Source: Hyaloraphidium curvatum SAG 235-1 (taxonomy: Eukaryota > Fungi > Monoblepharomycota). From it: a stretch of 64,000 bases of DNA. Positions 40,813 to 64,000 of this stretch are shown here, in pieces. Position numbers and translations under genes: made by a program. The notes beneath the pieces were generated by a model. That model was not told where the DNA came from. It searched no databases and saw only the letters and a program-made list of their open reading frames with translations. The DNA is taken from assembly GCA_025558095.1 (NCBI GenBank), contig JAIVFI010000023.1:248001-312000 (forward strand). The letters run 5' to 3'. The number at the start of each line of letters is the position of its first letter. The first letter of the stretch is position 1.

Positions 40813-43800
40813 ATGGCCAACACGCACGTGCGGCGTGGCCGTGGCGGAGGCTTCCGGGGCGGTCGGGGCGGTGGCGGCCGGTCGTGGAATGACCGCCAGG
40901 CCGGTGGGGCGCCCCCGCCCCTCCCGCCCCGCGAGGCGGAAGATGGGGCCAATACGGCCGCCATCAGCGAAGGAGGATACCGCGATGATTTCGGGGACAG
41001 CGCCGCCGTGGACCGTCTGGAGGAGATTCGGCAGATTGACGCGATGGACCTGAAGATGGGCTTCGGGCGTTACTCGGACGGGCCGGAGAGGCTGGGCTGG
41101 CTTGTCAACATGCACCCGGTGAGGATCTTTCAGGATCTTTCGTTCCTCGTCGTCTCCGCGTGGCGGGTCATGTTTCTGGAGTCTGGGGCTGAACGACGCG
41201 TTCGCCTCGCAGACCACCGTCACAGACAAGGACGGGTCCAACAGCAGGGCCGCGTTGGATCTCTACTTCCTCGAGGATTCGGGAGAGCGCTTCAAGGCGA
41301 CGGTGCTGTACGAGCCTTACATCCTGCTGTGCTGCAAGGTGGACCTCCCGGACTCGCGGTGGCGTCCTGAAATGACCTTTGGCGCCAGGAAAACACCGAA
41401 GCTGACATCGAGGACTACCTCCGGCGGAAGTTCGATCGCCTCATCGTCAAGATGACGCGAATCAAGAAGGAAGACCTGGATTTGGCACGTCTCCCTCTCG
41501 GTGCCCTCTCTAGACGGCCGAGCTGACTCACGCTCGACAGAGCAACCACCTCCTCGGAATCCAGCGGACCGTGATCAAGCTCCAGTTTGCCAACGTCCGC
41601 GATCTTCTTTCTGTGCGGAAAGCGCTGCTTCCGGCCGTGATTCGGAACAAGGAGCGACGCAAGGGCGAGGAGGTTTACGGAGACAGCTTGGCTGCGAACG
41701 GGACCCTCGTCTATGAGCAGAACGGCGAGGCCAGCAAGATCGCCTCCAAGCTCAAAGGATTCTCGGACGCTCTCGACAACCTGGAGGACATTCGCGAGTA
41801 CGACGTCCCGTACTACGTGCGCGTCGCCATCGATTTGGGTAAGTTCCTCAGCGCAGTTCTGTCGTGCTCTTTCCCGAATGCTCTGCAGACTTCCGCGTAG
41901 GCCTGTGGTACAGCTGCATTGCCGACCCCTTGACGGATACCATGAGGATCTCGCGGCGGGACGACATCCTCCACCGTGCCGAACCGGTGGTTCTGGCTTT
42001 CGATATCGAGACCACCAAGAGCCCGCTCAAGTTTCCCGATGCGGAGATTGACTGCATCATGATGATTTCGTACATGATCGACGGCCAGGTGCGTTGTTTT
42101 GGAGCGATTTGTTGGCCTCGAAAGTGAACAAGATCCCCGCGGCAGGGCTATCTCATCACCAATCGCGAGATCGTGTCGGAGGACATCAACGATTTCGAGT
42201 ATACACCGAAACCGGAGTACGAAGGCCCCTTCACGGTCTTCAACGAAGAGAGCGAGGTGCGTGTGCCTGTCCTCACTTTCGGCGGGTCCTGACTCGATAC
42301 CGCGAGCAGAAGGCAGTCATAATGCGCTTCTTTGAGCACATCAGCGCTGCCCGGCCCACCGTCATCGCCACTTACAACGGTGACTTCTTCGATTGGCCTT
42401 TCGTCGAAGCCAGGGCAAAAGCAAACGGACTCGACATGTTCCAAGAGATTGGTGGGCCGCTTTCGGTGCCGCTCTCCGACAAAATCTGACGCAAAATCCG
42501 CAGGGTTCAAGAAGGATGAGCAGCAGGGCTTTTACCGCTCGACCTACGCCATCCACATGGACTGCTTCTGCTGGGTCAAGCGCGACAGTTACCTTCCCCA
42601 GGGTAGTCAGGGCCTCAAGGCCGTGACGTCGGCCAAGCTCTCGTACAACCCGATGGAACTCGATCCCGAGGACATGACTCGCTTCGCATCGGAGCAGCCG
42701 CACAAGCTCGCCCAGTACTCGGTTTCCGACGCCGTCGCCACGTACTACCTCTACATGAAATACGTCCACCCCTTCGTGTTCTCGCTCTGCAACATCATCC
42801 CTCTGAACGCCGACGACGTCCTGCGTAAAGGTTCGGGAACACTCTGCGAGATGCTCCTGATGGCAAGTTCGGCCCCCGATATAGCAAGCCTCCCTCTTAC
42901 ACTGATCTGCAGGTCCGGGCGTACAAGGCCAATGTGCTTATGCCGAACAAGCACATTGACGAGCGAGGGAAGACTTTCGAGGGCCACATCCTCGCTTCGG
43001 AGACCTACGTCGGAGGGCACGTCGAAGCGCTCGAAGCCGGCGTCTTCAGGTCGGATCTGGACACCAAGTTCCGCATTGGGGTGGAGCAAGTGGACCAGGT
43101 GAGTTGCTTGTCTACAATTGTGCTCTGCCGTTCCTCACGCCCCACTCGTACTAGCTTATCGCCGAGCTTGACCAAGCTTTGAAGTTCAGCATCGAAGTCG
43201 AAGCCAAAACGTCGATCGATCAGGTCGCAAACTACGACGAGGTCCGGCGCTCTCCACGGGCTGAAATGTGGCAAAGTCTGATTGCGAACATTGCAGGTCA
43301 AGGAAGCCATCCTGTCGCGTCTGCAGAATCTGCGCGAGACACCCAATCGGCTCGAGCGGCCCCTCATCTACCACTTGGATGTTGCGGCCATGTACCCCAA
43401 CATCATCCTCACGAACCGCTTACAGCCGGATGCAATCGTGGACGAGACCGTTTGCGCATCATGCGACTTCAACCGGCCCGGTTCCGACTGCCAGCGGGAG
43501 ATGACGTGGTCGTGGAGGGGGGAATACTACCCGGCCAAGCGAAACGAGGTCAACATGATCCGCAACGTCCTCGAGAACGAAAAGTTCAAGGGACGCTTCC
43601 CGGAGGACCCGATGAGGTCGTGGCACGAGCTGTCGGAGGCGGAGCAGCACAAGATGCTCGAAAAGCGCGTCGGAGACTACTCGACCAAGGTCTACCGCAA
43701 GAGGCACGAGAACCAGGTCATGCCGAAGCAGGCCACGGTCTGCCAGCGCGAGAACTCGTTCTACGTCGACACGGTGCGGAACTTCCGGGACCGCCGGTAC

Positions 43801-46800
43801 GAGTACAAGGGTATGCACAAGCAGTGGAAGAAGAAGGCCGACGATGCCGCCGAGAAGGGTGACCTCGTCGAGCTGGACCGCTGCAAGAAGATGGTCGTGC
43901 TGTACGACTCGCTGCAGCTCGCGCACAAGTGCATCCTCAATTCCTTCTACGGCTACGTCATGCGCAAGGGGTCGCGGTGGTACTCGATGGAGATGGCGGG
44001 CATCGTGTGCCTCACGGGGGCCACCATCATCCAGATGGCGCGGCAGGTCGTGGAGAAGATCGGCCGCCCGCTCGAGCTGGACACGGACGGCATCTGGTGC
44101 ATCCTGCCGGCGACTTTCCCCGAGAACTTCAGCTTCCAGCTGAAGAACGGCAAGAGCGTGCACATTTCGTACCCCTGCTCCATGCTCAACCACCTGGTGC
44201 ACGCCAAGTTCACCAACCACCAGTACCAGGATCTGGTGGATGCGGAGTCGTTCGAGTACCGGAAGAAGTCCGAGAACTCGATCTTCTTCGAGGTCGACGG
44301 CCCGTACCGCGCCATGATTCTGCCTTCGTCGACGGAGGAGGACAAGCTCCTCAAGAAGCGCTACGCCGTATTCAATGACGATGGGACCCTCGCTGAGCTC
44401 AAGGGGTTCGAGGTCAAGCGCAGGGGTGAGCTCAAGCTCATCAAGACCTTCCAAAGCGAGATCTTCAAGGTCTTCTTGGAGGGCGGCACGCTCAAGGAAT
44501 GCTACCAGGCTGTTGCTTCGGTCGCGGACCGCTGGTTGGATGTCCTGTGGGTTCTCCGTTCCCCCGCACGCTGCAGTCCGGCTGAACTTCTTGCAGCCAC
44601 ACGCGTGGAGCCGATCTGGACGACGAGGAGCTCATCGAGCTCATCTCGGAGAACCGCTCCATGTCCAAGACGCTCGAGGAGTACGGAGGCCAGAAGTCGA
44701 CCTCAATCAGCACGGCGAAGCGTCTCGCCGAGTTCCTCGGGGACCAGATGATCAAGGACAAGGGCCTGAACTGCCAGTTCATCATCTCGTCGAAGCCTGC
44801 CGGGATTCCTGTGTCCGATCGTGCGATTCCGGTCGTCATCTTCCAGACCGAGATGAGCGTGCGCAAGCATTACCTGAGGAAGTGGCTGCGGGATCCTTCG
44901 CTCAACGACTCGGACCTGGACATCCGCTCGATCATCGACTGGCACTACTACCTCGAGCGTTTCGGCTCCGTGATCCAGAAGCTGATCACGATCCCGGCGG
45001 CCATGCAAAAGGTGGAGAACCCCGTGCCAAGGGTCAAGCATCCAGACTGGCTGGCAAAGCGGGTCACGGCCAAGGAGGACCTGGTCAAGCAGCGCCGGAT
45101 CACCGACATGTTCGGACGTCCGTCGAACCAGGCCGGAGACGGTGCTGAGGACGTCGACATGGATGATGCGGACGAGGGCGCCGCAGCTGGAGGCGGCTCT
45201 CTGGACATGGAGGACATCGCCGGCGGAGGGAGCCAGGCGGCAAAGGCGGCCTCCCGCCTCATGCCTGCGCTCGCCAGGGTGACGAAGATGGCATCACAGC
45301 AAGGAAAGGACTCGCAGGCGCCGCCACCAGCCGTCGATCTCGGCCCGGTACCGGACATCAACGAGGACTACGGCGAATGGCTCGAGTACCAGAAGAAAAA
45401 GTGGAAGCAGCAGCGTGCCGAACGCGATCACCGGCGCCGGCTGTACGGCAAGGTGTCTGGCGGGCCGGGGTCCCGCCAGGTCTTTGGCGGCGGAGCGAAC
45501 GCTGGACGCATGTCCAAGTTCATCAAGCGCCAGGCCGAAACTCTCTTGAGGTATCCATGGCAGGTGCTGCACATTGCAGAGACGGATGTCCCCGGGGAGT
45601 ACCGGCTCTGGGCCCTCGTCGACCGCAACCTGCACTCCATCAAGGTCAACATTCCCCGGGTGTTCTACGTCAACAGCCGCATCCCCTACCCCGAGGAGAA
45701 GCTGAACGACCAGAAGAAGTACACCGTGACCCGGTGCGTGCGCACCTTGCCGCGCTCGCACAAGTGCGAGTACCTCTACGAGTTCGTCATGCCGGAATCG
45801 GTCTACCGCGAGAACGCCAAGCTCATCTCGAGCTTCGTGAGCCACCCTTCGATCGAGGGCGTCTACGAGATGCAGGTGCCGCTGCTGTACCGAGCCCTGG
45901 TCAGCCTTGGTGCGACCGTGCTGGTCGACAGCAGCCAGCGGGCCACGTACCTTAAGGACGGCATGGAGAAGGGGTTCCAGCTCAACCACCTGAGGCGGGA
46001 TGCATCCAGCAAGCCCTACGCCAACCTCATCCGCGATACCCGCAACTTCCTCAACTTCATGTTCCTCTACCACGCCGGCACCGAAACCCGGCACATCTTT
46101 GCGCTCTTGTCCACCGTTTCGAACCGCTGCCACATCTTTGTCGTCGACCGCACCAACCAGATGCCCAACGTGGGCAAAATGTACACGGACGTCAGGAATC
46201 GTGCCGCTGCGGGCGGAGACGACTCGCCGCCGGCGACTCAGGCTCCACAGTCCGAGGCCTTCCCCTACTTCGAAAGCCTGGACGTGAGGACTAACATGTT
46301 TGCGACGATGCGCGACGCCTGCAGGGCCATCCAGAAGGACGTCGTCGAGTACCAGCAGGGCCGCCACGGGCCGACGGTCGTGCTGATCCAATCGCCCCGC
46401 TCGCAACGCGAGCTCCTGGAGCACATCCCTGCCATTCACGAGTTTCCCAACCTCTCCATCCCCTCGCACCGGAAGGACAGCGACTTCCCCGCCCTCGACT
46501 GGCAGCGCTACGCCGCCAAGCGCATGGTCGGACACTTCCTCAACGTCGATCGGTGGCTGCGCGAACGCCTCGCCCTCGCGCGTTACGCCGATGTCCCTTT
46601 CTGCAACATCGAGAGCGACTTCCCGGTCTTCCTCAGCGACCTTTTCTACGCGCGCAAGCTCCGGAACAACGACATGCTCCTGTGGCTCTCCCTTTCGGAT
46701 CGGCCGGACCTCGGCGGCAGGGAGGCGGACGAGAACTTCTACTTCTCGGAGGAGCTGCAGAACCCCGAGATCAACGAGCCTGGGGCTTATGGCAACATCT

Positions 46801-48491
46801 GCGTGCAGCTCGATATTGCCAACCTCGCGGTCTCGTCCCTGCTACGGTCGAACCTGATCAACGTGCTTGAAGGGAGCACGGGTGCGGTCGGATTCGACGC
46901 CGTTTCGGCGTCGCTGGATGCGCACGTGAAGACGGGGCGGGAGGAGGAGGACCCCTCTGCCGAGGCGCAGGCGGCACTGGACCTGTCGAGCACCTCGGCG
47001 GACGCGCAGGCCATCTCGCCGCAGCACTTCCTCCTGCTCAAGAGCATGGTGCTCGAGTGGTCCTCGGACGTGTTCCGGACGCAGAGCAAGTTCGCGGACA
47101 TGATGCTGCAGAACGTTTTCCGGTGGCTGACGAGCTCGAGCGCCAAGCTCTACGACCCGGCGCTGTACGCCCTTGTGCAGGGGCTGATGCGCAAGGTCTT
47201 TGCGCAGCTGATCGGCGAGTTCAAGCGGCTGGGCTCGCAGATCGTCTTTGGCAGCTTCGAGAAGCTGGTGGTGGTGACGAGCAAGCCCGCGCTCGAGGAC
47301 GCGGTGCAGTACCTTCGCTTCCTATTGCGCAACATCCTCGCCAAGCCGCTGTTCGAGCTGCTCGAGGTGGTCCCGACGGCGTACTACGAGAACCTGCTGT
47401 GGATGGACGTGGCCAACTACGGCGGCATGCTGCGGCGCTTCCCGGACCCCGCCCAGATCGCGCCCGAGGATCTGCGGCCTCCGCCAGCGGCGGCGGCGGA
47501 CATGCACTGGAACATCAAGGAGTACCTCCCTCCGGCGGTCCAGAAGCAGTTCACCAACCTGGTCGCCGAGTTTGTCATCGAGCTCTTCAAGCGCAAGCTC
47601 CGGTGGGCCAAGAAGGGCCTCTCGCAGCAGATTCGGGAGCGCGCGGCGGTGGCGGCGGAGCAGGAGCTGGACAAGGAGAACCACCTGCAGGGCGCCCCGA
47701 CCGCGGACGGCCGGGTGCTCGGGGACGTGGAAGAGGAGGACGAGACGGCCGACACCGAGGTCCGGGCGCGGCGGCAGTACGTCTCGTCGGTGATTGCGCC
47801 CAAGCTGATGCAGCTCGTGGCGGACATCGAGAAGAACGTCAACCCGGCGGCCAACACGGCCGACAGCGAGGAGGACCGGCGGGCGGCGTCGTTCCCGCGG
47901 CTGCCGGGGTCGCACCTGGACCTGACCAACCCTGCGCTCGAGTTTGCAAAGACCGTCTGCGCTGCGCTCGCCCTGGACACGTCGATCGAGAAGCAGGTCC
48001 GCGTGCTCAAGAAGAACGCGCTGAAGCTGATCAACGTCGCCGAGTTTGCCCCCGAGGCGCGGTGGGAGAACCCGTGCGAGACGGTGCGGCTGCCGCGGGT
48101 CATCTGCGACTACTGCAACTCGTGCCGCGACCTGGACCTCTGCCGCGACCCGGCCTTCATGCCCGACCCGGGGAGCTCCGCCCCCGCGCCGTGGAAGTGC
48201 GCGTCGTGCGACGCCGAGTACGACAAGCGGGTGATCGAGGAGGCGCTGGTGGACATTGTCGCGCGGCGCATTGCCGGGTGGCAGATGCAGGACCTCGTGT
48301 GCCGCAAGTGCCGCACGGTCAAGGGGGACAACCTGTCGACGGTGTGCGAGCGGTGCGGGAACGAGCTGTGCTGCACGCAGAGCCGAGAGGACGTGATCCG
48401 CAAGACGAGGGTGCTGGCCAACATCGCCGAGCTGAAGCGGTTCGAGCTGCTGCAGATCGTGGCCAACTCGGTGCTCTCGAAGCTGGGGTAG
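40813..48491 (+). CDS. POL2: DNA polymerase epsilon catalytic subunit, multi-exon
   Basis: [16 protein letters not shown], Exo[62 protein letters not shown]-terminal CysA/CysB zinc motifs. Confidence 0.98.
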
Positions 48492-48654: not shown

Positions 48655-49170
48655 TCACCACTTTGCCTTTCGCCGTATTCTGTCCAGGATGGTTGCCTTT
48701 CGCACCATGCTGGCGTGTTCAAAGGCCCTGTCCTGCCGCGTGACGTGCGCCTTGCGCTGCGGGTGTTCCCGCCCCAGCGGCGCCAGCTGCATCACCACCG
48801 TCGGCGGCACGTCGAATTTCTTCGCCAGCTTGGTCGCTGTCCACGACACAGCGTCCTCCAGCCGCATCTGCCGCATTTTGTCGACCTCCTCGCGCGACAG
48901 CCGCTTCGTGTACGAGAAGCGGCGGCCCCAGCGGGTGGGCAGCGGCGGCGGCAGCTCAGCCAGGGGTGCGGGTGCGGGGTTCCTGTGGATGAAGAGCGAT
49001 CCGTCGTCGAGCTCGTGGCGCGGCGTGTTCGGGGGGATGTCGCGCGAGTAGTGCTTCGCGCGCGCCCATCGCGGGGCGGCGCGGTCCCGAAGCGGTGCCG
49101 CGCTCCGGGCGAGCGCGCAGAGGCCGCCAACGGGCCGCGCGAGGCCCAGGCGGGGGAGCAGAGTGGCCAT
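48655..49170 (-). CDS. Mitochondrial large-subunit ribosomal protein mL58 (yeast MrpL20-like)
   Basis: Presequence; LDDGSLFIHRNP..LPPPL..LSREEVDKMRQMRLED..WTATKLAKKFDV..RRKAKW*. Confidence 0.8.
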   Translation of the reverse strand: MATLLPRLGLARPVGGLCALARSAAPLRDRAAPRWARAKHYSRDIPPNTPRHELDDGSLFIHRNPAPAPLAELPPPLPTRWGRRFSYTKRLSREEVDKMRQMRLEDAVSWTATKLAKKFDVPPTVVMQLAPLGREHPQRKAHVTRQDRAFEHASMVRKATILDRIRRKAKW

Positions 49171-49290
49171 TTCGACTTTGCTGGTGTTCTACTACTACTC
49201 AAGAATGCGACTAACGTCGCGAGGCTTACAGCCACTCTAACTAAAACCCCCACTCACTCGACCTCAACGAAAAACCCCTGAGGCCTGTCA
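49170..49290 (-). ncRNA. Candidate Fanzor omegaRNA (scaffold overlapping the CDS 3' end and element terminus, guide running into the host flank)
   Basis: Directly downstream of the Fanzor stop. Three stems: 49260-49285 (GGCCUCA..UGAGGUC), 49221-49237 and 49207-49220 (GCGAC-GUUA-GUCGC), then (UAG)3 at 49189-49197. Boundaries are inferred. Confidence 0.55.
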
Positions 49291-52200
49291 CCGTTGTTGA
49301 GGATGGTAAACAAGAAGATCCAGAGGATGTTGAACGCTGCGCTGATGTCCCTGCTCCACATCACGTCGCAGAGCTCGCAGTCTGTAACTATAGGTCAGCT
49401 CATCCTCTCTTTCCCGCGGCGGACATACTCACATTTAACACCCCAGATCGTCTTGTTGTTCTGCAGCAACACGCACTCCCTCCCCTTGGCCTGCTTGAGC
49501 ACGGTGATGTGGCACTCCCTGCACATCCGCGAGGTTCGGAACTCGCGGACGAACGAGAGGCACAGATCCTTGCGCCAAGCCGGCAGGTGTTGGTTCTTGT
49601 GCGGGTCTTTGCCTTCCTCCTCGAGGCGCCGAAGAGATTTGACGAGCTGCGCACGAATTGATCGTTAGTGATCTCAATGAATGTTTCCAGTTCCCACGTA
49701 CCTGACGGTTCGGAGTGGGAGCCCTTCCCCGGATGTTGGTCGAAAAATTCGCGTCGCCGTATGGAAGTACGGTCCCAACATTGCTCTGAAAAGAGATCCA
49801 CTCCTTGCCGTCCTCGCCACGGATAATGCCGATCACGCCCGGCGTGCCCACTTGCTTGCCGCCTCCAGGATCATACGGCTCGACAAGCACGTTGGGCGCA
49901 AAGTAGACCTGAGCGATCGTGGCCATCGTGTGGTCTCCCCGGCGCTTGCTTGTCATGCGCAGCTGCCTGTTGGATCCCGTGGTTGAGCATGGCATTGGAC
50001 GGCAGTTGTCAAAAGCTCACCGTTCACGGTAGCGTCCGTAGTGATCTACCGATCGAGCGTCAGAACGTCGTCAGGATTCAACGAAGAGGATTCGCTCGAC
50101 CCACCCATAAGCCCGGGGAGCGTGCGCAGCATGCAGACTGCGTGCCTCTCGAACTCCTCGGGGTCCGCGGTCCGGGGCGTCGGCAGCTTCGACGACCACT
50201 CCTCGACGGAACAAGAGCGCGTGACAAAGTCCTTTTTCTCCGGATCCCAAAAGCAGGCCTCCTGTCACGATGTGGGAAGTTCAGAGATCGATTCAGGCCA
50301 CATCCCGCGCAATGGTGCTGACCTTCAGGACCCCAGCCTCCTTCCGCCACCCCTCGCGGCGCTTGTTGTTCCGCGGGATGCCCTTCGAACGCCTCACATA
50401 GTCGCTCGGACACATCCTCTCCAGCTCGTAACGCGCCGTGCCCGGCAGCATCCCAAGCTTCCTCCAGATCTCGTCGGCCTCCTCCTGGGTCTTGCCGGCG
50501 ACCCTGATAAACTTGGCGCGGCGCTGCTCGAGCAGCTCCTCGCACTGCTGCTCGGTGAGGTCGCAGGGGAGCACCTCGCCGGGGTCCAGGCGGCGCCGTC
50601 GCTGCCGCTGCTTTTCGGGCGACAAGTTGCCCATGATGGACTCGATCGACGAAAGCGACTGCTGCTTCCGCTTTGCCTCTGCGGGGTCCTTGGCCGACGG
50701 GTACTTGTACTGGCGGGTGTAGAACTTGTTGTTGTGCACCCGCGGCTCGATGTCCATCTCCTTGGCGGGGATGAGGTCCCACTTGACGATCCGCCCGTTG
50801 TCGAAGGTGTACGAGAACGTCCACTTGAAACGCCGGCCGTCGGCAAAGATCTGTGTCACTGCAGTGTTGAAGGGGTTTGGGACCAGCTTGCTCCCGGGCC
50901 GCCGCGGGTCGTCGAGCTGCAGCTGCGCCATCCTGCGAATTGCGTTGAACTGCGCCTCGGAGATGATCGCCACGGAGGTGGTAATGGCCTTGTTTCCCGG
51001 ATCCGTCGCGGGAATGAAAGGCTCCCGAATGAGGTCGTCGAATTCGAGGAGGTCCTTTGGGAGCGACTCGAGGATCCGTTCTGAACGGGGGATCAGATCA
51101 CTGTGAGGCCGCTCGAGCTCGCTGCACTCACTAGAGAGAACGCCGAACTCTTTCATCTCCTCCGCCTCCAGCTCCTCCTCGCGCAGACGTTGCTGCTGCG
51201 CAAAGTCCCGCTTCTGCTGGTCACTCAGCGGCCCTCCGGCCCTCTTCTTGGCCTCTTCCTTCTCCTCGTTCAGCAGCTTTTCCGCCGACTTTTTGACCCA
51301 TTCCACTCGCGTCATGACGAAACGGAGCTCCACGCCGTTCGACTGCACCCCGTTGATGTGGGTGATGGTCGGAGTGCCGCGCACGACACATCCGCGAAGC
51401 AGATGACTGAAGTCAGAAAGATCAAATATCCATCCGAGGTAGAAGTCGCGGTCGGCTACGAACGCCTTCCTGGCCGCGGAGACCGAGGACGATCGCGTGG
51501 GGTCGAGCTTGAGTCTGTCGGCACGAAACTGCGTTAGACGACAAAGGCGGCGGCGCGGGAACGAGCGCACCGGCAAAGCAGGTCCGAGATGGCAGAAACT
51601 TCCCGGAAGTAGAAACCAAAGCGGTGCGACACGAGCGGGGTGAGCTGCGGAATCTTGATCAAGCGCAGAGGGCGCTTCGGCCGCGAAGGTGGCGCAGGAG
51701 CCGTCCCGGATGGCTTGGCGGCCGTGGAGGCCTCCGCGGCTGGAGCGGCAGCGGGTTCGGCGGCCGCCGACGACTTTGCAAGGTTCCTTTTCGGGCCAGG
51801 CGGAGGTCCAGGGGTGCGTGCTGCGGCGCCAGCAGACTTGGCGGCGAGGCGCTCGCTGCGTTTGCGAGTGCTCTTCCCCAGGTTCTCCATGAACTCGAAC
51901 TCGTCAAAGGGGCCGCCGCCGCCCGCGTCCTGCGAATCAACCGGCACAGACGTGCCTGCTGGACCCATGTCCTCGCCGGCAATCACACGCGGCGAGACCC
52001 GCGGTTGGCCGTGGGCCTGTTCGGTGGCCGTTGCCGCGGCGGACCCTGCGGCAAGAGCTTCCGACAGACCGCCCTCCGTCGCCGTTGGCTGAGGCTTCCG
52101 AGCCTTGCGGTACTCGTCGAAGTCCTTCTTGTACTGCACCAGCGCCGGCAAGCGGGCTTTGTTGACGTCCATCAGCGCCTTGATGACGGCGGTGCGCGCG

Positions 52201-55200
52201 GGGTGCACGACGTTCCACGAGACGTCGAACTTGGACTTGGTGCGGCGATTTCCTCCGGCATCCTGTGGCGCGGGTGCCGCGGCGTTGGCTGGCGGATTAG
52301 CGCCGCCGCCAGCGGCCGCAGCCTCCCCATCTCCGTCCTCGGCCTCTGTCTCCTCTTCCTCCAAGTCCTCCATCTCCTCATCCTCCGCGTCTTCGGCATC
52401 CTCTGCTCCCTCCTGTTCATCAGCATCCGCCACCGCGCCTTCGACGGCTTCCTGGGATTGGCGATGGGCGTGAGAGTGTGGAGGGGAACGTCGGAACAAA
52501 GCGAAAGCGAACCTCTGCCTTTTTCATCCGCTTCGTTGGAACCCAGCGCGGAACGATCTGGCCCCGGTCCGCCAGCTCGCGGACCGCGAGATGTTGCTCG
52601 AGGTAGTCCGGCGCCGCCTCCAGCATGTCGAGGTATGAATACAGCGGTTGCCTGAAGCCGTCCGAGATTCCGCGCCTTGCTGCGGTGTGCGCATCCTCGA
52701 AATTCTTCCGATCGTCGCGGTAGTTTGCCTGTAGGGTCTGCAGAAGGCAGCTGATGAGGCCTTGGCCGCGGATCGGAATGCAGCAAGCTGTACTTGCCTC
52801 CCGGTGCTCCTGATCGGTGATCATCTAAAGAAGCTCGTCGTCCGAAAGCTTCTCCCAGTCCGCTCGAAACTCCGCCTGCCGAAGAACGGGTCACGCACGG
52901 CCCAAAGAACTCCGTCCCGAGCGCAGCCACCCACCGCGAGGGTCTTGAACTGCTCGATGGTCTCCGGAGTTCGACTGCCAGGCTCTTCAAAGAAAGAGAC
53001 GGCTTGCTCCTCGATCAGATGCTCGATGACGACGCGGCGCAAGGGCCACGGTGGCACGGGCAGGTACTGCGGCCTCGGCATTAGCGTTACCGTTGGCCGC
53101 GTCGAGCGCAAACCTACCATCATCTTGGCCACTCCCTCCAGTTGCTGGCGCAGCTCCGCCAGCTTTTCTTCCCCGCCCAGACGTTCGAGGACAAAGCTTC
53201 GGATCCGCTCAGCCTCGACCACCTGGTTGTCCGTGAAGACGCGTCGGCCTGTTGCAGTGCCAGCCGCGGCCTGCGCCGCAGGTTCCGCGAGGTCCCCCTC
53301 CGTCTGGTCCGCCGCGGCCTCGGCCTCGAGCTCCACCTCGTCCTCCTTGTCCTCGGCCGGTATCCGCCGCTTCTTCCTCTTCCCCGCCCTGCCGCTCGCC
53401 CCCGTGGCCTCGGCCCCGGATCCCGTGGTGCCGGCCGCCCCGCCGGCGTCGGTGGCTCTGGAGCCGACCTTTGCCTTGGCCAGGAGGAAGGCGGCACCGA
53501 GTTCCAGTTGGTGAGCCGTGAGGATCATCGAGTCCCAAAGGCAGTCCCAAATCCTCATGGATATGTGGTTCTGCGCCTTCGGCACGAAAAGGATAGCGCC
53601 GTCGGCGGTCCGCGCATCCTGGACCTTGGCGCGGATCAAGGTGCGAATATTCTTAGCCGTCTCCCAGACGACCACTCGTTTGGCATCCTTGACCAAATCG
53701 CGGACGACGGAGTCGATCACCTGCACGAAGACATGCGTCAAAGACGACGGATACCGGGAATGCGAGAATGAGCTCACAGAGCCAGACAGATGAGGTAAGT
53801 ACGACTTGCGGTCGTCCTTTCTCAGCGAGGGCAGAAACTGCTCAATCACGGTCTTGAACATGGCCTCGGCCGTCGCTCTGCGCTCGGCTGCGAAGTCGCC
53901 CGACTCGAGGCCAGCCCCGGAACGAAACGTGTCCAATCGCTTTGCGGTTTCAAACTGCAGACGGCTGGCGACTGACAGAGTGTGGTTCGGGTGAGCAGTA
54001 CTTACCGCCGCACCCAGCCGCAAGGCTTACCCATTGTCGCCATCCGCTTTACCGTTGAAAGATCAAGCACGTATGTCTCATCCGCGCTCCATCTACGCTG
54101 GAACATGCCGACCGCGAGACACAGCTCCTTGCGGAGTTTTTCCGCGTAGGTCTCGGCCTCGAATGCGTGCACAAGAATGTGGCGGAGGTGATCGTGGACC
54201 GCTGAGTTCACGGGTTTGCCGTGGGCCGTGTGAGTGATCTGTGCGAGCCACGATGGGTCAGGAAGAAGCATCCATGCAGATATTCCGACGGACCTTGGCC
54301 TCGTGCGACTTGCTGTCCTTGCCGCCGCGGATCTGGAGGTTGACGAACCGCCGGACCTTCTCGGAGCAGAAGGCGCGGTGCCTCGTGTTCTTGGCGATCG
54401 GAGCCTTCGAGGCCCCGCAGACGGTGCAGGCGCCGTCCTCGGTCCAGCACTCGGACCCGGACGACGGCGGGGCAGGACCACCGCGTTCCCCACGTCCGCC
54501 GGTATCTCGCGCAGTCCGTTCGGGGGTCGCCGGGGCGGAGGCAGAGGGCGGGGGCAGGTCCGCCGGAGCTTGCTGCTCCTCCAAAGGTGCCGGTTCCGTC
54601 GGTGTCGCCTGGCGTTGCGTGGTCGATGCAGCACCGGCCGTGTCCGGGATCGTGCGGCCGGCTTGAGAGACGGGCTTTACATCCGGCGCGTCGAGTACAA
54701 CGCCGAAGTCCACGCTTTCCGAGGCGTCCGAGAACCAGCCTGGCAGGTCCGTTAGTTGGATTCGCAACCACGATGCGCTCATTTGCCTACCGAATGATTG
54801 GGCAATCTGCCGCGCCCGAAGCCAAGCTTCTGCGTCATACAGAGCCGGAAACGCGCGTGCTTCCGGCGAGATTCCCTTCTTGCACGCAAACGTCGTCGTG
54901 ACTCGCGTGCCGAGGATAGACCTGAGCCATATGAGAGTGAGCACATGTTGCCTGCGCGAAACAGGAGACCCACCAGTTGTTGGTTCGCATCCAGTCGACG
55001 CTGTAGCCAGCGCGGATCGGCGCCGTCATCATCTCGGTCATGGATCCGAAGCCAATGATGACGTCCTGCTCCTTCAACTCCACTCCCTGGTGTCCGAGTC
55101 CCTTCCTCCATGGCTCCACGTTCTGGTTGAAGAACACGTCGGGCACCTTGAGCCTGATCTTGTCCGCGACGCTCCGATCCGTGGCAACCCAGTAGTGGTT

Positions 55201-58200
55201 CCGGGCGTTGTGCAGCTTCAGCGCAGCCTCCGGCTCGTGCGGCATCGCCAGCCGCGAGTTCTTGACGAGCTCGCCCGCCAAGGGGCTATCGCACAGGCTG
55301 CCGCCCGCATCGGGTTCAGATGAACGCCTGCAGATGCGCAGATCCACTCACTGGCACGCATGCGTCACCTCCACCTTCCCGCCGAACTCAATACCGCAGT
55401 GGATCCCGCCGCGGTCCGCGATGGAAAGTATAAGAGCGACGACGTCGCCCGGGACGGGCAGGTCCTGCAGGATTTCGCTGAAGGAGGTCCTCGGGCGGCG
55501 GAGGACGAAGGAAGCGGGTTGCTCGCTGTCGCGGCGGGAATGTGTCAGTTGCGGCTTCACTTTGGTTCGACCGGCCCTCCACCCACGCGTCGAGATCGAT
55601 GCCCTGGGCCATCATCACGTGCGCGACGCGGTCGACCGTTCTCCTCTCCTCGTCGTCGGCGGCGAGTGCCGAGAAGGTGAATAACAAATCCCGCAACGTT
55701 CGGAAATCTCGCCAACCGTACGGCCGCAGGGCATGGCGTCCGGGCTTTGCTGCGTCCGACGGCGATACGGCGACCTTCAAGGGCCGCAGAGAACGGGCTT
55801 GAAAGATGGGGAGGGTACGTAGGTCCGCGTCGGGGGATTGATGATACGGGAGGTGAGAAGTCGGGTCGAAGTCGTCCTGCACGATGGTGTCGTGTCAGCT
55901 TGCATGATGGCGAGCTGTCCCGGCGTCAACTCACGGAGTAGTCGAGCATTTCACCCTTCCAGCGGAGGTGCCAGATCCAGCACCACGCCCGCCTCCGCTC
56001 GTTTCCGCCCCTCGGCAGGAAGCTGACGACCTCGTTGAGCTTGTTGACCTTGGTCTCGGAGACGAGCAGGCGCTTGGCGGCCTCGAACGGCTGGCCGAGT
56101 CCGGGAGCACCGTCACCCCACGGTCCTTTGGACAGCAGTTGCCAGAGACCCGGCGCCGGCGGGGACCGCGGCTCGAAGAGCGCCGGCCGTTGGTGCGGGC
56201 GGTCCCGGCCGTGTTGGGGCTTGGAGTCCACCTCGATGGCCTCAGGCGGCTCGGAGCCCGTGGCGAAGCGATAGAAGCTCGTCGCTAGCTCCGCAGCCGG
56301 AATGGTATCGAGAATCTGCCGGACGCTCGGGATCGGCAGCCCGGGGACATGGCCGCCCAGAGGCTGGTGGGAATGATCAGCGTCGCCCAGTTGCGTGCCG
56401 CGAACGGTGTCACTCACGTAGGTGAAGGCGGGCGCTGCCGTGGCACCGCGGTCGACGTCCATCTGCACGCGACGCTGCGGCGTTCCTGGCGCAGGTTGCG
56501 GTTGACCTGTGGCCGAGACGACAGCGTCAGCGGCAATGCAGGAGACATGGAGGCCGAATGGCTCGCCTTCCACGGCAACGCGCTTTGCCGCCGGGGACGC
56601 GGCGCCTGGCGTCGGTTTCGGGTGCGCCGGCGATTTCCCCTTGACCGGCGTTTCACCGGTCGACATCCTGGCGTCCGCCTGCTGCTTGCGCTCCTCGTTC
56701 TTGCGGGCTTGCTTGGCGGAAGGGAGGCGACGTTGCTGGGGTGCCGCGTCAGCACATGGAGGAAAAGGCGTCGGGCATTGCTCGGAACCCACGTCGGACT
56801 TCCGGGGAGGTTGCGGCGGCACGGAGGTTATGGAGTAAGCCCCCGGCTGTCCAGGGAGCTTTGTGGTCTTCCTCTCCGCGATCCCGCCCTGGCCGATTTC
56901 GATCTTGGTGCGGGGCCCGGGAAGGTGGCCGCTGGGCGGGTTGTTGAGGTCGGGAGGTTTGTCGGGGGAGCCGACTGCGCGGGCGGCATCGTCGTAGCGG
57001 TGATACTGCGAGGGCGGGCGAGTCAGGGGTGGCATCGACCGGATGCAGCCGGCCGAGTACCAGTCGGAGGAATCGGGAAAAGTCCGTGTCTTCGTTCCGG
57101 AAGACGCGCTCGAGGCGGGTACGCTCGTTCCCTTGAAAGAACGTGGGTGCCTCGGGAAATGTCACCAACTCAAGGCACGGATGGATGCCAGCGGGGTTAA
57201 TCATCCACGAGGCGTAGATGCGGTGATACGCCGACGTGATCGCCTCCCAGCCCCGCGAAACGAACTCCTCCGCCTGCGTTCCCTCCAACCCCTCCACACG
57301 ACCATACCGATCTGCGAGGAGCTTTGCCGCGGCCTTTGCGGCGGCCTCGTCGACCTTGGGGTAGACGCTCGTGAGGCAACGGTACACGAAGCCCTGGACG
57401 GCGCCCATGGGGGCTTCCGAGATCGTTGGCGCGGGAGCCGGGGGAACGTAGTCGGCGGGAGGGTTCTGCGTGGTAGAGGTGAGATGCGCACACGGCTCCG
57501 CGCCGAACCGCTGCGGACCTTGGTGAAGGCGAGGGAAAGAACCGAGTGGTGTTCCTTGTTACCCTTGATGAGGTTCAGGACGCTCCGGAGCGGCCCCGTA
57601 TCCTCCGCGCGGAGGACCGCAGTCTTCTGGATCAGGCTGTACATCCTGTCACAGGCTTGGGCTGGCGATCGAGTCGAAGTTGCCAATACGTGCCGGTACA
57701 GGCGAAATGCCGCGCCGTACGAGCCGCAGCACATCACGACAGCCCATGAGAAACTGTTGATGGCCGCAACGTTCTTAGCCGGCGCCACCATCATCTTGAG
57801 CTTCTCGACGTCGGAGCGCAGTTCGGCGGGGACGTCCTGCTGGCGGAGGTATGCCGGCCGAATCTCGGCCGTCTGCCCCGTGACCGTCTCCCACCAAGGT
57901 CCTCCATCGGCGGCCGAGACGACGGTGCGGTCGGCGGGGTCCACGACGGCGTTCGGGTCCGGCGTGGCGTTCTGCAGTTGAGGACGGCGTGGTCATGCCG
58001 CGCCCGTGGACCACGGCAAAAGCATGCGCGAGACCCACCGCGCGCACTCGAAGGGAAAACATGGATTCGTCGAAGGAGCTGAACACCGCGCCAAAGGCCG
58101 TGAGCTGCGAATAAAAGTGCGCCTGCGGCGCGAGGTTGTGACGGAGAATCGCGTCCTTCACGGCCCTAAGCGGCTGCGGGCCCGGCGGGTGGGGGAGCAG

Positions 58201-61200
58201 GAATTCGCGGAATGCCGCGTATTCTCCGAAAAGCCTCACTATGGCCCTGCCGATCGCGAGGGCCTTTCCCGCGATCTCCTTGTCCCTCTTGGTCTTGGGG
58301 TCCGCAGATGGCGTGCCTCGAACCAACAGCACCCCAAGGAATCCGGCGTCGGCGGCCTCCTGCGGTCCGAGGGCCGTAGCTGCGGAGATCATAGGGCGTT
58401 CGGGTACTGCTCGAAGGCTCGGCCGCGGCTGGTCCGCAAGTGGGTCCCCCGCAACGTCGTCGCCGGCCGTCGGTGCCCCACCGCGCCCGCGGATGCGCAC
58501 GTGGAGCACCGTGCCGTCCGACGGCACCTCGTCGGGGTGAACGAGGCGGCCGGCCGACGTTTCGAGGCGGAAGTCGTCCACGCCGAAGTCATCTGCACCA
58601 AACGCGTCCGCTACGATCCACTGCGAGGCTTTAGGTCAGCAACATGCCGGACTGGACAGATCGGCCACGATCCTTACCTGTACGTCGAGGTAGGTGGCAG
58701 AGGCGGGGAGCGCGATTCGGTAAGTGTCGCTCGGGCCAAAGGAAACCATGATGCACTTGTCGGGACGCGCGGAGTCCGTGCCGAAGCCGTGGATCCCCGA
58801 CGGGATCGGTTGGTCCGCGGGCTGCCGCAGCAGCGCTGCCAGCTCCTTGAGGGTGCCGGGGGGGAGGTGAGGCAGGAACCGGGTACGGGACTTGTGGTGC
58901 GTTGAGGGTTTGAAGTGCGGGTCTGGGATGGCATAGTGGCTCCCGTGTGCAAACACGATGCACTCGATCACTGCGGAGGAAGCGTCGCCGTGAGATCTGG
59001 CAATACCTGGAGCATCGGGAACGCCCACCAGTCGCGATCTCGGAGAGCCGGACTTGAGGAAGCGGGGGGAGTGGTCGTCCCTGGAACCATCTCGGCTGTC
59101 CGCTGGACAAATGGCGTGGTGGCAGGGGCTGTCCGCTGGCGGCGACGAAATGCTTGACCTCGTCGGCTGGAAGCGCTGCGTCAGAACTCTGCGAGCCAAA
59201 CACAGTGCAGCGGCGCTCACGGGTGGGGTATCCTCCGCGCTCGTTTCCAAGGTCCCGCGCCGCTTTTGCCACCAGGGCAGGGACCAGGAGCTCGGGACCG
59301 ACCACTGCGGGCGGCCTGGCGTAGCGGTAAGTCCTCCAGTCGAGTCGCACCAGCCGGAATCGCGTGGCCGCGATGATCCATTTGTGGCGCTCCTCGTAGT
59401 CCAGCAAAGTGACGGGGCTTAAGGGCCGGATTGCCGGCGACGGCGTTGCCGGCATCCGAGCCAGGTAGTCCGCGGCGGCGTCGGCCTTGGCTTGCTCCTC
59501 GGCGTCCTCCCCTGACGCAGCGGCCCGCTTCCGCCGAGCTTTTTCGTTGGCTTCCTTCAGCGCCGCGGCGGCACGGGCCCGCGCCTCCACCCGAGCTTCC
59601 TCCAGCGCCGCCAACCGGTCCACCTCCGCGTCGACGGCCGCCACCGCGCCGTCCACGTCCTCCGGGCCGTCCAGCACCGCTTGCGCCCGGGCAGCGGCTG
59701 CCCTGGCCTTGGCGGCTTTGGAGGCCGCAACGTCGGCTTGCCGCCTGGCCCTACCCGCGGCCGCGATCGACGCGCGAAACTTCTCCTCGGCTGCACGGGC
59801 CTTCCGCCATTCGCGCTCCTCCGTCCAGGACTTCTCCTCCAGGCACCGCCCGAGGAGGACCCGGATCCTTTCTCGGGCCTCTTCGTCGGCGGAGGCTGCT
59901 TCGGCTTCGGCTTCCATGATTGCGTCTGCCTTCTCCTCCTCGACGCGGGCCGAAGTCTGGATCGCGTATGCCTAGATATGCGGATGCACGCCGGATTGAG
60001 AACCACGCCCGAGGCTGCAATGTCGAAGGGGACGTACCCGTGCCCGCTTGCAGCACCACCTGTCCACGTTGACCTCGCTCTGCGCCTGCCGCGCCTTGTC
60101 CTGCAGGTAAGCGGCCCAGCCGTCCCAAAAAGCAGCATCGTCCTCGGCTTCCCATACGGCCCGACGGGCGGAATCCGAAAGCAGCGCCTCTGCCTTGCGG
60201 CGGCAGCGCGCGACACCTTGCTTCACCGCATCCAGCGTCGAGCCTGTGCACGCGCCCTTGCCGAGCCCTTTACGAACGGTGAGTCGGGCCTAAAGCCATC
60301 GCGCAGGAGTGCACTACCTCTTGCCTGCTCCTCCGCCTGCCTCCTCGCCGGCGCAAAGACAGTCCGCAGGTCCTTCTTGATTCGCCGGCCACCCTCCAGT
60401 CCAGCAACGGAATCCTGCATCACCTTTGCTTGCTGCTGCATCCGCACAAAGTCTCTGTCCTGCTTGAGGCGGTCGGACGGAGCGGCGCTGGAATCGCGAG
60501 ACATGGCGGGCGTCTTGGGGCTGACCGACGTGCGCGGCGCCTGCTGCTCGACGACGAACTCGCCCGAGCGGGATCTGATGCTGCCGACCAGTTCCGCAGA
60601 TCCGTCCTCCGTTGCTCCAATCCACGCCTGGCGGAGGAAAGGGCAGGTTGGATGTGCGCCAGCGTCGACGACGTTCCGGTGCCACGTACCGCTTTGCGGT
60701 TCGAAGCCGGCGCCCTCTTCCCCTTGACCTGCTCCATCTTGAACACCCGCGCGACCTGATGCGGGTGTTTGCATGAGCTGGCCGCCGGAGCCGCGGTGCT
60801 CGGGGGTGAAACCCACCTTGTCCTCGTTGTTCGACCTGAACCCGATTAGCTGCTCGTCATCGGTGCCTCCGAGCACCGTCGCCTTGATGGTGGTCGGCTT
60901 GCTCTGTCGGATGGCAAAGGATCGCGAAGGGTCAGCTTCTCTGCCCCGCTCGTGCGACGGCCCCGCCGCCCCGTAGATCTCCGGTGCGGAAGCCCGTGAT
61001 GCCCCCACCTTTGCCTTTCCTGGCTCGTTCAACGCCCGCCGGACGGATACGCTGGCCGCCTGGCCGCCGGGCGGGCCCCGCAGCGACGCCGAAGGCTGCG
61101 CCATGGGGGCGCACGGGTTCTCGAAACAGGCGCGGCCGCGCGTCCAAACGACCCGTAGCCGACGAAGAATGGCAATAGAACGCTCCTTGACCTACGCGGA

Positions 61201-61500
61201 GCCGGCGGCGGTCCCGACGAGGCCGCGCCGAGTCGGTGGTCGGTCCGCTAAAGACGCGTCTGCCGCACAGCCGCCCTCCACGCGCCAAGTCAAAGGGCGC
61301 GGCCACTGCAAACCACACGAGCCAAAACCGAGCACGTCTCGGTCCCGAATTCAGCGAAACGCGTGTTTCCGAAGCCGCTTAGGCCTTTGCAGCCTGCGCC
61401 GGCCTGCCTCAGCCCGTCGGAGTTTGCCGAGCATCTCCCGTTCCCTACGCACGACGCTCTGGAACCCGAGATCCCGATGTTATCCCTGGCCCGAGCGCGC
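49189..61500 (-). mobile_element. Large Fanzor-carrying transposon-like insertion (far boundary undefined)
   Basis: Housekeeping genes stop abruptly about 20 nt upstream of the mL58 ATG. More than 12 kb is occupied by one Fanzor-containing gene with a hairpin/(TAG)n end. I recognised no transposase and no matching TIR or TSD within the window. Confidence 0.6.
49254..61104 (-). CDS. Giant multi-exon Fanzor1 (TnpB-like RNA-guided RuvC nuclease) with a very long N-terminal extension; one in-frame TAG at 52825-52827
   Basis: About 29 GT/GC-AG introns keep one frame. WED-like LTPLVSHRFGF and NGVQSNGVELRFV; RuvC-I IPATDPGNKAI (D at 51001-51003); SVEEWSSKLPTPRT..LMDHY; VLPYGDANF..RGRAPTP..LVKSL; RuvC-II FVREFRTSRMCREC (E at 49542-49544); CELC; RuvC-III WSRDISAAFNI (D at 49347-49349); GDRPQGF..* with stop at 49254-49256. 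The nuclease call is firm; continuity of the far N-terminal exons is less certain. Confidence 0.85.
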
Positions 61501-64000
61501 CGGATGGCCGTTCCTGCCGTGGCTGAGTGACCGGGACCCCCCTGGTCACGTCGACCGGGGGTAGCCCCGATCCGCCGACCGCGCCCCGCGCTCTACCTTC
61601 GCCGCGCGACACACCGGTGCTCCTCGGTGCCCATTTCACTCCTTTGCCTGCGAGCTCCCTGGCCGTGTTCCTTTCCACGGCGACTTCCGCCGGCGAGGCA
61701 AAGCGTCGTCCTCGCGGGATCCGAGGACGCTTCCCTTGCTCCCGACCCAAAGCGGTTTCCGCGACGAACACTGTGAAGAGGCTCCGTTGGATGGTCTCGG
61801 CAAGTTTGGATGAGAGGTAGCCGCGGCAGCCGAACTGTGCCGCGCGGCGGGGCAGCGCGCAACGCCGCCTGCGTGCGACGGCCGCCGCCGCCGCTGCGCC
61901 GGCAGCGGCAGAGCAAACTGTGCCCGCGATGCGCTGTCTTTTGCCCGCCGTGTTGGCCGGACGGTGCGGCCGCCGGATGGCCGTGGTGTTCGTCGGCGAG
62001 TCCGGCGCCCTTTTCCGCGCGCGCCAGTTCATCTCGGGTCGGGCGCCACCGATCGGAGACTGGAGACTTTCCAACGCGAAGAATGTTCACGGCGCCTTGG
62101 CACGCGCGGTGGGAGCGCGGTGGGATGGGCGAAAGGTTCGGCCGACCATCGTCTGGCGACCGCGCTCGCCCGCGGTTGATTCTTTCCGCGATCCAGGTCG
62201 ACTGTGCGCGGATTCATCCTCCTTTCCCCCCGATCGTCGTCACCGGACCTGATTACGTGACCTCGATAGCGCGGGCCCGTGGACTTGGCGTCTGGAGAGC
62301 CGGACGCTCGAAGTTGCTGGACGAGTGTGAAGTGGAGCCTATTGCTGTGTAGGAAGGCCTCCGATCGCCCATCGGTTCGCCGTTCTAGCTTTCCACGTCC
62401 ATCATCCGCCGAGATTGGCCGGCTTCGGCGCGTTCCGGGTACTGCGGGACCGTCCTCGTGTGTGAGCTGCTGCGCCTGCGAAAGAATCCGCGATACGACA
62501 AAGATTTTGTTCCATCGCCAACCGTCGCGCATCCCACAACCCCTGGCCTCTCGCGACGTCTTTGAGCCCCGGAAAGCGTGGTTCTGCCCAAGATCAGCTC
62601 CCTGCTTGCGCTGCTGGTCGCCGTCTGGGGCTGCTCTGCAGCCGCATCGCGACACGCGGGAACATGGTCTGGGGCGTGGCATCACGGCACGGCGTCGCAC
62701 CCCTCATGGCGGCAGCCCGGGACCACGTCGAACAGGACCTTGTGCTTGCCATCTGCCTTGAGCACGCACGAGACGTCCTAACTGGCGTCGAACCGAGGGA
62801 TCAGAATACCCGAAGCACGCCATTGCCGAGCAGGCACCGAGGCGCGGCGATCGCCTCGACCACTTCAGTGGTCTTCATCCCGCGCGAGTGTACGCAGAGC
62901 AAGTTATACACCTCTACAGCGGTTTCTTGCCCTTCAAGCTCGAGAAACCCCCACAGGATTGATGATGCAGGTGCTTGACCGTTTTGGCTGGCAGCATTCC
63001 CTGCCCTCATCCACCGCCAACTCAATCGATACATCCATTCCGACATCCCCGATATAATATAGCACCCAAAAACTCGTGATAACCGGGCGGACATGGTCGG
63101 GAACGTGCTGTACTTTGCCCAGTCGTTTGTTCCATCACAGGGAGTCGCGCATCTGGACGATCCCTGCAGATACAAGCACTAGCAGTACAAGCAGTACACG
63201 CTTGCTTGTTGTCATCGCCCTGACTTGCAGAATGGATCTCAATCTCCATAGCTTTTGCCGTTCGGCCGGGCAACTCCGACCCTCCCCGAAGCATGGAGTA
63301 CGTACTTCCATGCTGGGTAGATCTACAATGGCGATAGTCAGCCAAAATGCTGTTACAGACATGCTGTATCTTTTTCGGGGCCCGTGGTGGCCGCAGCTTC
63401 TCACTTTCGGCTTGTCAAGTCGTTTCCGGTCCAACTCGCGCAATTCTAGCCGCCTGCGCGCCCCTCGGCAGAAGCGGGTTCCGCTTCAGCAAACTGCATT
63501 GTGCTGCGGTCATCCTGCGTTGGTAACCGAATCTGCATTGCATTTCCCTCGCCATGCTGCTTCATGCGTCACGCATTTTGCCACACGGCTCGAACCCGTT
63601 CCTGTCTGCGCCGTTACGTGCATCAGACCTGGACAAGGCCTCCCGATGCTCGATTCTGCTGTACCGTTATGTGGACGGTCCACCTCAATGGAGGGAATGA
63701 TGGCAGGTGTCATGATCAGGCGAGGAAAACTCAAGTTGTGGTTCAGAAATCCGAGCTACCGTCCCATCTATGCGTCTTGCTTGGTGCTGCACGCCTCCTT
63801 CGATTGCGTTGTAGGCACTTGGTTGATGATTTCTTCACGTTCAATGCGGCTGGAAGCAAACTCTGGGGCATGTCAAGACTCTGGTAACGTTGCCTACGAG
63901 AGGCGGAATTGGAGGCCATGAATACGGCACTTAACGGCAAGGAAGCCAGGAATCAGTCCCAACATGGATCATAATGACGCATAAAAATGGCTTTTTGAAC

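Follow-up and report, generated by a model that had tools for sequence, protein, structure and literature searches.

A transcribed Fanzor1 gene of giant predicted size, carried by a large IS630/Tc1-mariner-type element in the fungus Hyaloraphidium curvatum

Most Fanzor1 (Fz1) proteins are 600-700 aa long, and their omega-RNAs measure 75-150 nt including the guide (PMC11423790). Fanzors are defined by a relocated RuvC-II Glu, the canonical position being taken by Gly or Pro (PMC10711439, PMC10530073). Both mariner-linked Fanzor1 genes (PMC3627910) and intron-rich Fanzors (PMC10530073) are already known. In the mariner-borne elements PGv-1 and PUl-1, a mariner-type DDE transposase is encoded at the left and Fanzor1, by a gene of its own, at the right; the interior is chimeric (PMC3627910). 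Chlamydomonas Fanzor1c, CrFNuc, which is intron-rich, multi-copy and transposon-linked, is associated with Helitron2 (PMC10530073). Restorative homing has been reviewed, and the benefit that OMEGA nucleases bring to DDE transposons is less clear (PMC13565253).

Here we analyzed a 64,000-nt stretch of one contig (C23) of Hyaloraphidium curvatum SAG 235-1, referred to as the window; C15, C12, C29, C13, C3, C5 and similar labels denote other contigs of the same genome. Unless stated otherwise, coordinates are window positions, and the element, its two genes and the host gene at its right end are all read on the minus strand. The Fanzor encoded here resembles Fanzor1 (SpuFz1, PDB 8GKH; GtFz1; PpFz1; PMC11423790) in its DPG, relocated Glu and RD residues, the Gly at the canonical Glu position, a C4 zinc finger, a candidate TDG-like WED motif, its right-end position in the element, and the best profile and fold matches of its relatives. 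Unlike these proteins, it has a core of ~1,300 codons in a frame of ~3,200, and the insertion in its RuvC exceeds the FRI domain of PpFz1 (~100 aa) in length. The element repeats the layout of PGv-1 and PUl-1, including separate genes and a chimeric interior, but is 18-20 kb long, lacks classical terminal inverted repeats (TIRs), and combines an IS630-like DD57E transposase with a giant Fanzor frame. Like CrFNuc, this Fanzor1 is intron-rich, multi-copy and linked to a transposon, but the partner is IS630/mariner rather than Helitron2. Prokaryotic TnpB and Fanzor2 (ISDra2, mimivirus L79) have a similar RuvC-zinc-finger C-terminus, but the H. curvatum element carries no IS607 or IS200 transposase, and TnpB keeps the canonical Glu. 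Our literature search retrieved no paper dealing with both Fanzor and Hyaloraphidium and none on a giant Fanzor fusion; compared with the published Fanzor literature searched, the giant size, the RuvC/REC insertions, the ~1,900-aa extension and the TIR-less ends are new.

An earlier note, made from the DNA letters alone, had proposed a Fanzor1 gene split by five introns. These introns (49382-49432, 49647-49701, 49967-50020, 50046-50104 and 50262-50322; 51-61 nt each) all have GT..AG boundaries, and their phases yield a single frame that passes through a 25-nt microexon and ends at TGA 49254-49256. Transcript data bear the junctions out. A 7,725-nt contig from X1, the single public run containing this stretch (from one study, and possibly from the source strain), shows the last three introns as joints, and for the first two, the loose ends of the contig match the adjacent exon. 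In total, 14 introns are spliced out of the contig in the interval 49967-54973, three of them from the original five; such clean skips show that X1 is RNA, its label being itself a guess. The 11 additional RNA-supported introns, reaching 54973, include an in-frame intron of 51 nt (51081-51131) and a GC-AG intron (52738-52797), so that at least 16 introns of the Fanzor gene are supported by RNA, out of ~28 in the full gene model. The public NCBI models of two H. curvatum paralogs, P0001 (from the C15 copy) and P0002 (from C12), rely on the same exons, microexon included, and canonical splice sites are kept at equivalent places in the C15 copy.

Read backward from the C-terminus, the exons contain all the motifs quoted in the earlier note. 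The last exon (49254..49381) encodes the second CxxC and the RuvC-III Asp (49347-49349), and the one before it (49433..49646) the RuvC-II Glu at its relocated position (49542-49544), six residues ahead of the first CxxC. In the exon 49702..49966, Gly (49756-49758) occupies the canonical TnpB Glu position. The microexon (50021..50045), with both joints present in the RNA contig, encodes a REC2 helix, and the next exon (50105..50261), delimited by the RNA contig and the sequence, a Fanzor1-conserved LPT..T motif. By motif scan, the exon 50323..51080 contains the RuvC-I DPG (Asp 51001-51003), a RuvC insertion of ~170 aa and the bridge helix. It is preceded by the exon 51132..51514 with an SNG motif, the putative equivalent of the Fanzor1 TDG in WED and weak on its own, and by the REC region, five exons at 51571..53720 with large low-complexity insertions, delineated by motif scan and RNA joints. 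Thus, the D-E-D triad is intact in sequence, as had been claimed, and the three residues would be expected to converge in one active site.

The hallmarks that place the protein among the Fanzors are the DPG of RuvC-I, the Glu before the first CxxC with Gly/Pro at the canonical position, and the C4 zinc finger followed by RD (RuvC-III), with an exon match at E 2e-13. In a 23-sequence motif scan, DPG was the top RuvC-I match in both the C23 and the C15 copies (z 5.2 and 5.7), and it is also kept in the paralogs P0005 (from C13) and P0006. Motif scanning also located the bridge helix in the C23 copy (z 4.7), an LLP-type REC motif near 51580-51660 (z 5.3), and the best match to the REC 'NH helix' in the exon 53118-53720 (z 3.7 in C23, 5.0 in C15). 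The WED motif, SNG in C23 and TNG in C15 and P0005, ranked first in C15 and second in C23, and hhalign gave it a weak match (E 0.025). RuvC-I is the weakest link, with a profile E of about 0.02, as for WED. These two assignments, weak as profile matches, are suggested by motif rank, by conservation, and by the order of WED, RuvC-I and bridge helix, which is correct in the C23 element.

Stronger matches came from relatives. No Pfam family exceeded its cut-off within the Fanzor frame when window ORFs and single exons were searched; PF07282 did so on P0001, which is 75% identical to the C23 copy (68-92% exon by exon). A search with P0001 retrieved 128 proteins, 2 of them unrelated cystatin-cathepsins, and a profile built from 51 of the 128, P0001 included, matched SpuFz1 at 1.5e-43, GtFz1 at 1.4e-35 and PpFz1 at 2.9e-33, far better than Fanzor2 and TnpB (1e-10 to 3e-3; Fanzor2 1.2e-10). 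The profile was required, since phmmer with P0001 alone found no match in the PDB. The predicted structure of P0001, which lacks RuvC-I (pLDDT 74), also had SpuFz1 as its best match (Foldseek E 1e-5; VIA Z 10.3 over 218 aa, rmsd 3.9); the gap to Fanzor2 is small by VIA (Z 9.1) and large by profile. In the model of P0005, the RuvC-I part had low confidence and was out of alignment. The relatives' profile, the fold of P0001 and the motif scan together bear out the Fanzor1 identity. The published spacing of 125-275 aa from the Asp to [TS][TS] (PMC3627910) is exceeded because of insertions: D and E lie 410 codons apart in the C23 copy, compared with a median of 167 in relatives and 659 in P0005. 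P0032 and P0100, of about 2,600 aa, were considered as giant relatives and discarded as cystatin-cathepsin proteins.

The gene proved much longer than first proposed. Position 54360, given in the earlier note, is not where the frame begins, nor is this an intact nuclease gene of ordinary size: the Fanzor makes up the C-terminal part of a frame of ~3,200 codons, about five times the usual size, with a premature stop specific to this copy. With RNA-supported introns, the frame is open from at least 55.3 kb to its stop, bar one TAG, and predicted introns prolong it to about 60.4-60.75 kb (3,200-3,300 codons), a conserved Met near 60441 being the likeliest start. The unaligned 3,361 nt of the RNA contig would reach about 58.7 kb under the gene model, a figure obtained by arithmetic, not by alignment. 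The N-terminal extension (53778..60755, ~1,900 codons; introns RNA-supported to 54973 and predicted beyond) matched no family or homologue in Pfam, the atlas and homologue searches by exon, within their limits of length and cluster size, and two exons tested were found in no copy other than C23 and C15. A stretch at 58477..58720, split by a predicted intron and conserved in C15, ends in RGG, a motif that we take to resemble the ubiquitin C-terminus; family and homologue searches with it gave no ubiquitin-like match.

Comparison with the C15 copy indicates that this long frame was translated and selected: the C15 counterparts of the compared exons contain no stops, a GT-AG or GC-AG intron allows an in-frame join at every modelled C15 junction, and pN/pS lies between 0.19 and 0.74 in 21 of 21 exons compared between the two copies. 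Positions 58466-62554 are 89% identical to C15, compared with about 73% or less in the rest of the gene, which suggests a recent recombination or gene conversion between the C23 and C15 copies. C13 and C15, for their part, have 5 kb in common at 95%.

In the C23 copy, this frame is interrupted by a TAG (52825..52827) that probably falls inside REC1. The X1 contig has no variant letter there, and C15 has a sense codon. Alternative decoding was rejected, given that TAG terminates the adjacent Pol epsilon gene and that sense codons occupy the position in sister copies. A second TAG lies in the transposase of this element, where the C5 copy has GAG. Because each of its two genes carries a TAG, the C23 copy is probably dead as a full-length protein and persists as a still-transcribed relic. 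The C15 copy, open at every modelled junction, is by sequence the candidate intact member. The presence of a spliced C23 mRNA despite the stop weighs against this explanation. An ATG (52822-52824) directly follows the TAG, and the 1,020 codons downstream are open with D-E-D intact, so the TAG-ATG pair might act as a working stop-restart, or be read through, such that C23 makes an active Fanzor of ~1,020 aa or of full length. We consider this improbable: neither the stop nor the Met is found in C15, and the nonsense change in the transposase, absent from C5, points to decay. Furthermore, the stop comes after the best 'NH helix' match, so that a 1,020-aa product starting at this ATG would be likely to miss part of REC1 and WED.

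The Fanzor gene occupies the right part of an IS630/Tc1-mariner-type element of about 18.1 kb that runs from 49187 to the window end at 64000 and on to about C23:315320 (window-equivalent 67320). At the left, a separate ORF (window-equivalent 64809-67257), broken by the TAG, encodes an HTH-DDE transposase with DDE_3 above cut-off, HTH_33, and an IS630-like DD57E spacing; the transpos_IS630 profile scored E 4e-9, below its cut-off. A transposase-Fanzor fusion in this element was rejected, as the transposase frame stops at window-equivalent 64809 and the region 61.2-64.8 kb is non-coding and mosaic, contains frame-breaking indels, and shows no codon periodicity. Segments of the interior at 62604-64000 recur on C5, C3, C40, C26, C21, C32 and C10, and a plus-strand ORF of 281 aa (63076-63921) has no Pfam match.

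The right end stops sharply at 49187, and there are exactly four such ends in the genome, on C23, C15, C12 and C29. The C15 element (359059-378820 of that contig, 19.8 kb) has the same layout at an unrelated site, and its similarity to the C23 element extends leftwards beyond the window. On C12, a 1.7-kb non-autonomous deletion derivative (C12:32268-33961) consists of a left end of C15 type, fused directly to the 3' half of a Fanzor, and the right end; this half (P0002) is 94% identical to that of the window, lacks RuvC-I and has an open frame. C29:418170-418231 is a solo right end of 62 nt that matches C12 at 100% identity; the 16 kb upstream contain nothing else of the element. This solo end may be an independent guide-RNA locus or a fragment captured during repair. 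No classical TIRs were found at the C23, C15 and C12 ends. C15 and C12 each carry an 8-9-bp inverted repeat placed ~20 nt inward from either end; in C23, no such repeat exceeds 6 bp. C23, C3 and C12 have TA as the last two nucleotides of the left flank, where C15 has CA, and all four right ends read TAGAA, which means either TA plus a fixed GAA or no TA duplication. A Helitron end, considered from the 3' hairpin, was discarded given the lack of a CTRR end and the IS630 transposase at the left.

Given the non-coding mosaic between the two genes, the lack of classical TIRs, and C5 and C3 copies that are alike in the left part and then diverge, the Fanzor might not be IS630 cargo at all, but a mobile unit of its own, or a domesticated gene, lying downstream of a transposase by chance. 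This seems to us slightly less probable still than restart at the ATG, because the entire layout recurs in C15, the C12 derivative joins both extremities within 1.7 kb, and the subterminal repeat is found inside both ends of C15 and C12. Moreover, a genome-wide check for paralogs turned up more than 15 other transposase-Fanzor pairs, many of them near-identical in score and about 7.3 kb apart. The proposal of a putatively programmable nuclease family in this fungus is supported, as a family, by these many IS630-plus-Fanzor pairs; the C23 copy itself is broken. Multi-copy families are found on C3, C5, C6, C7 (two), C11, C15, C28 and C35; on C4, C5, C16, C25 and C36; and on C2 (two). These families, in which the IS630 transposase lies ~7.3 kb upstream of the Fanzor C-terminus, are young, and the C23 locus represents an older, larger branch of the transposase-Fanzor radiation. 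Larger pairs are also found on C13 and C3. P0005 (C13:341094-344224), with TNG, DPG, E and D present, lies 19 kb downstream of a transposase; over 4 nt, its probable right end resembles the C23/C3 left end read as reverse complement.

Between the stop codon and the element end, 67 nt (49187..49253) are non-coding, a length that fits known Fz1 omega-RNA sizes. The last 52 nt are identical to C15 at 50 of 52 positions, compared with 55-74% identity in three introns. This segment contains two invariant hairpins, without covariation and with folding z of -0.1 to -2.4, which is not significant, and an Rfam search with it gave no match. From its conservation and position, we consider it a candidate omega-RNA scaffold, although transposase binding at the element end could explain the conservation instead. 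The adjoining 16 nt of flank (49171..49186), delimited by the point where the four copies diverge, are the predicted guide segment and at the same time the 5' leader of the mitochondrial ribosomal protein gene MRPL20 (48655..49170; Pfam MRP-L20, E 1.9e-12). The MRPL20 start codon begins 17 nt beyond the end of the element, so that its promoter or transcription start is probably within the element.

The right neighbour at 43282-48491 encodes, as read from the sequence, the catalytic subunit of DNA polymerase epsilon, and RAD51 was read as a neighbour on the left; the gene next to the element on that side is presumably UNC-50-like. On C29, positions 402084-403363 contain a tandem array of 8-9 copies of a ~151-bp unit. 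That the locus is kept for the host, its end serving as the MRPL20 promoter or leader or a Fanzor-guide complex regulating MRPL20 through the leader that doubles as predicted guide, is the least probable reading, since a guide will always match the flank it derives from, a TAM is not expected at the filled site, the catalytic residues are intact, unlike those of repressor derivatives, and it would account for the retention of the end but not of the protein.

We regard it as probable that this is a Fanzor1 on a large IS630/Tc1-mariner cut-and-paste transposon that would be retained through restorative homing, with the C23 copy now inactive and the C15 copy a candidate for an intact one. The underlying anatomy consists of the spliced mRNA, the WED/REC/RuvC/zinc-finger core, the common element ends and the separate transposase at the left end. 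By analogy with described systems, the transposase would excise the element, and the Fanzor protein would bind an RNA made of the last 50-100 nt of the element and about 15 nt of flank. The complex could then cut the empty site left by excision, beside an AT-rich TAM, and repair from the sister chromatid would copy the element back. The long N-terminal part would most likely add DNA- or chromatin-binding or regulatory modules. The non-significant folding of the end, the lack of classical TIRs, the weak profile matches of RuvC-I and WED, the purely predicted introns above 54973 and the less clear gain for DDE transposons weigh against this picture.

Public annotation misses the giant Fanzors, the P0001 and P0002 models representing the last 413-456 aa only. 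For genome editing, the protein is too large, and the window copy is probably dead. The C15 copy allows a direct test of whether so swollen a RuvC retains cleavage activity and of what the extension contributes. More tentatively, the family, intact in C15, might comprise an active RNA-guided nuclease of ~3,200 aa, its ~1,900-aa extension containing undescribed DNA- or chromatin-acting domains that are possibly released by cleavage after the ubiquitin-like RGG; we lean against this reading, but if true, it would provide a natural multi-domain OMEGA effector within a mariner lineage that has no TIRs and has had its ends reshaped into guide RNA. A spliced frame under purifying selection and five times the usual Fanzor1 size indicates how far eukaryotes have stretched OMEGA nucleases.
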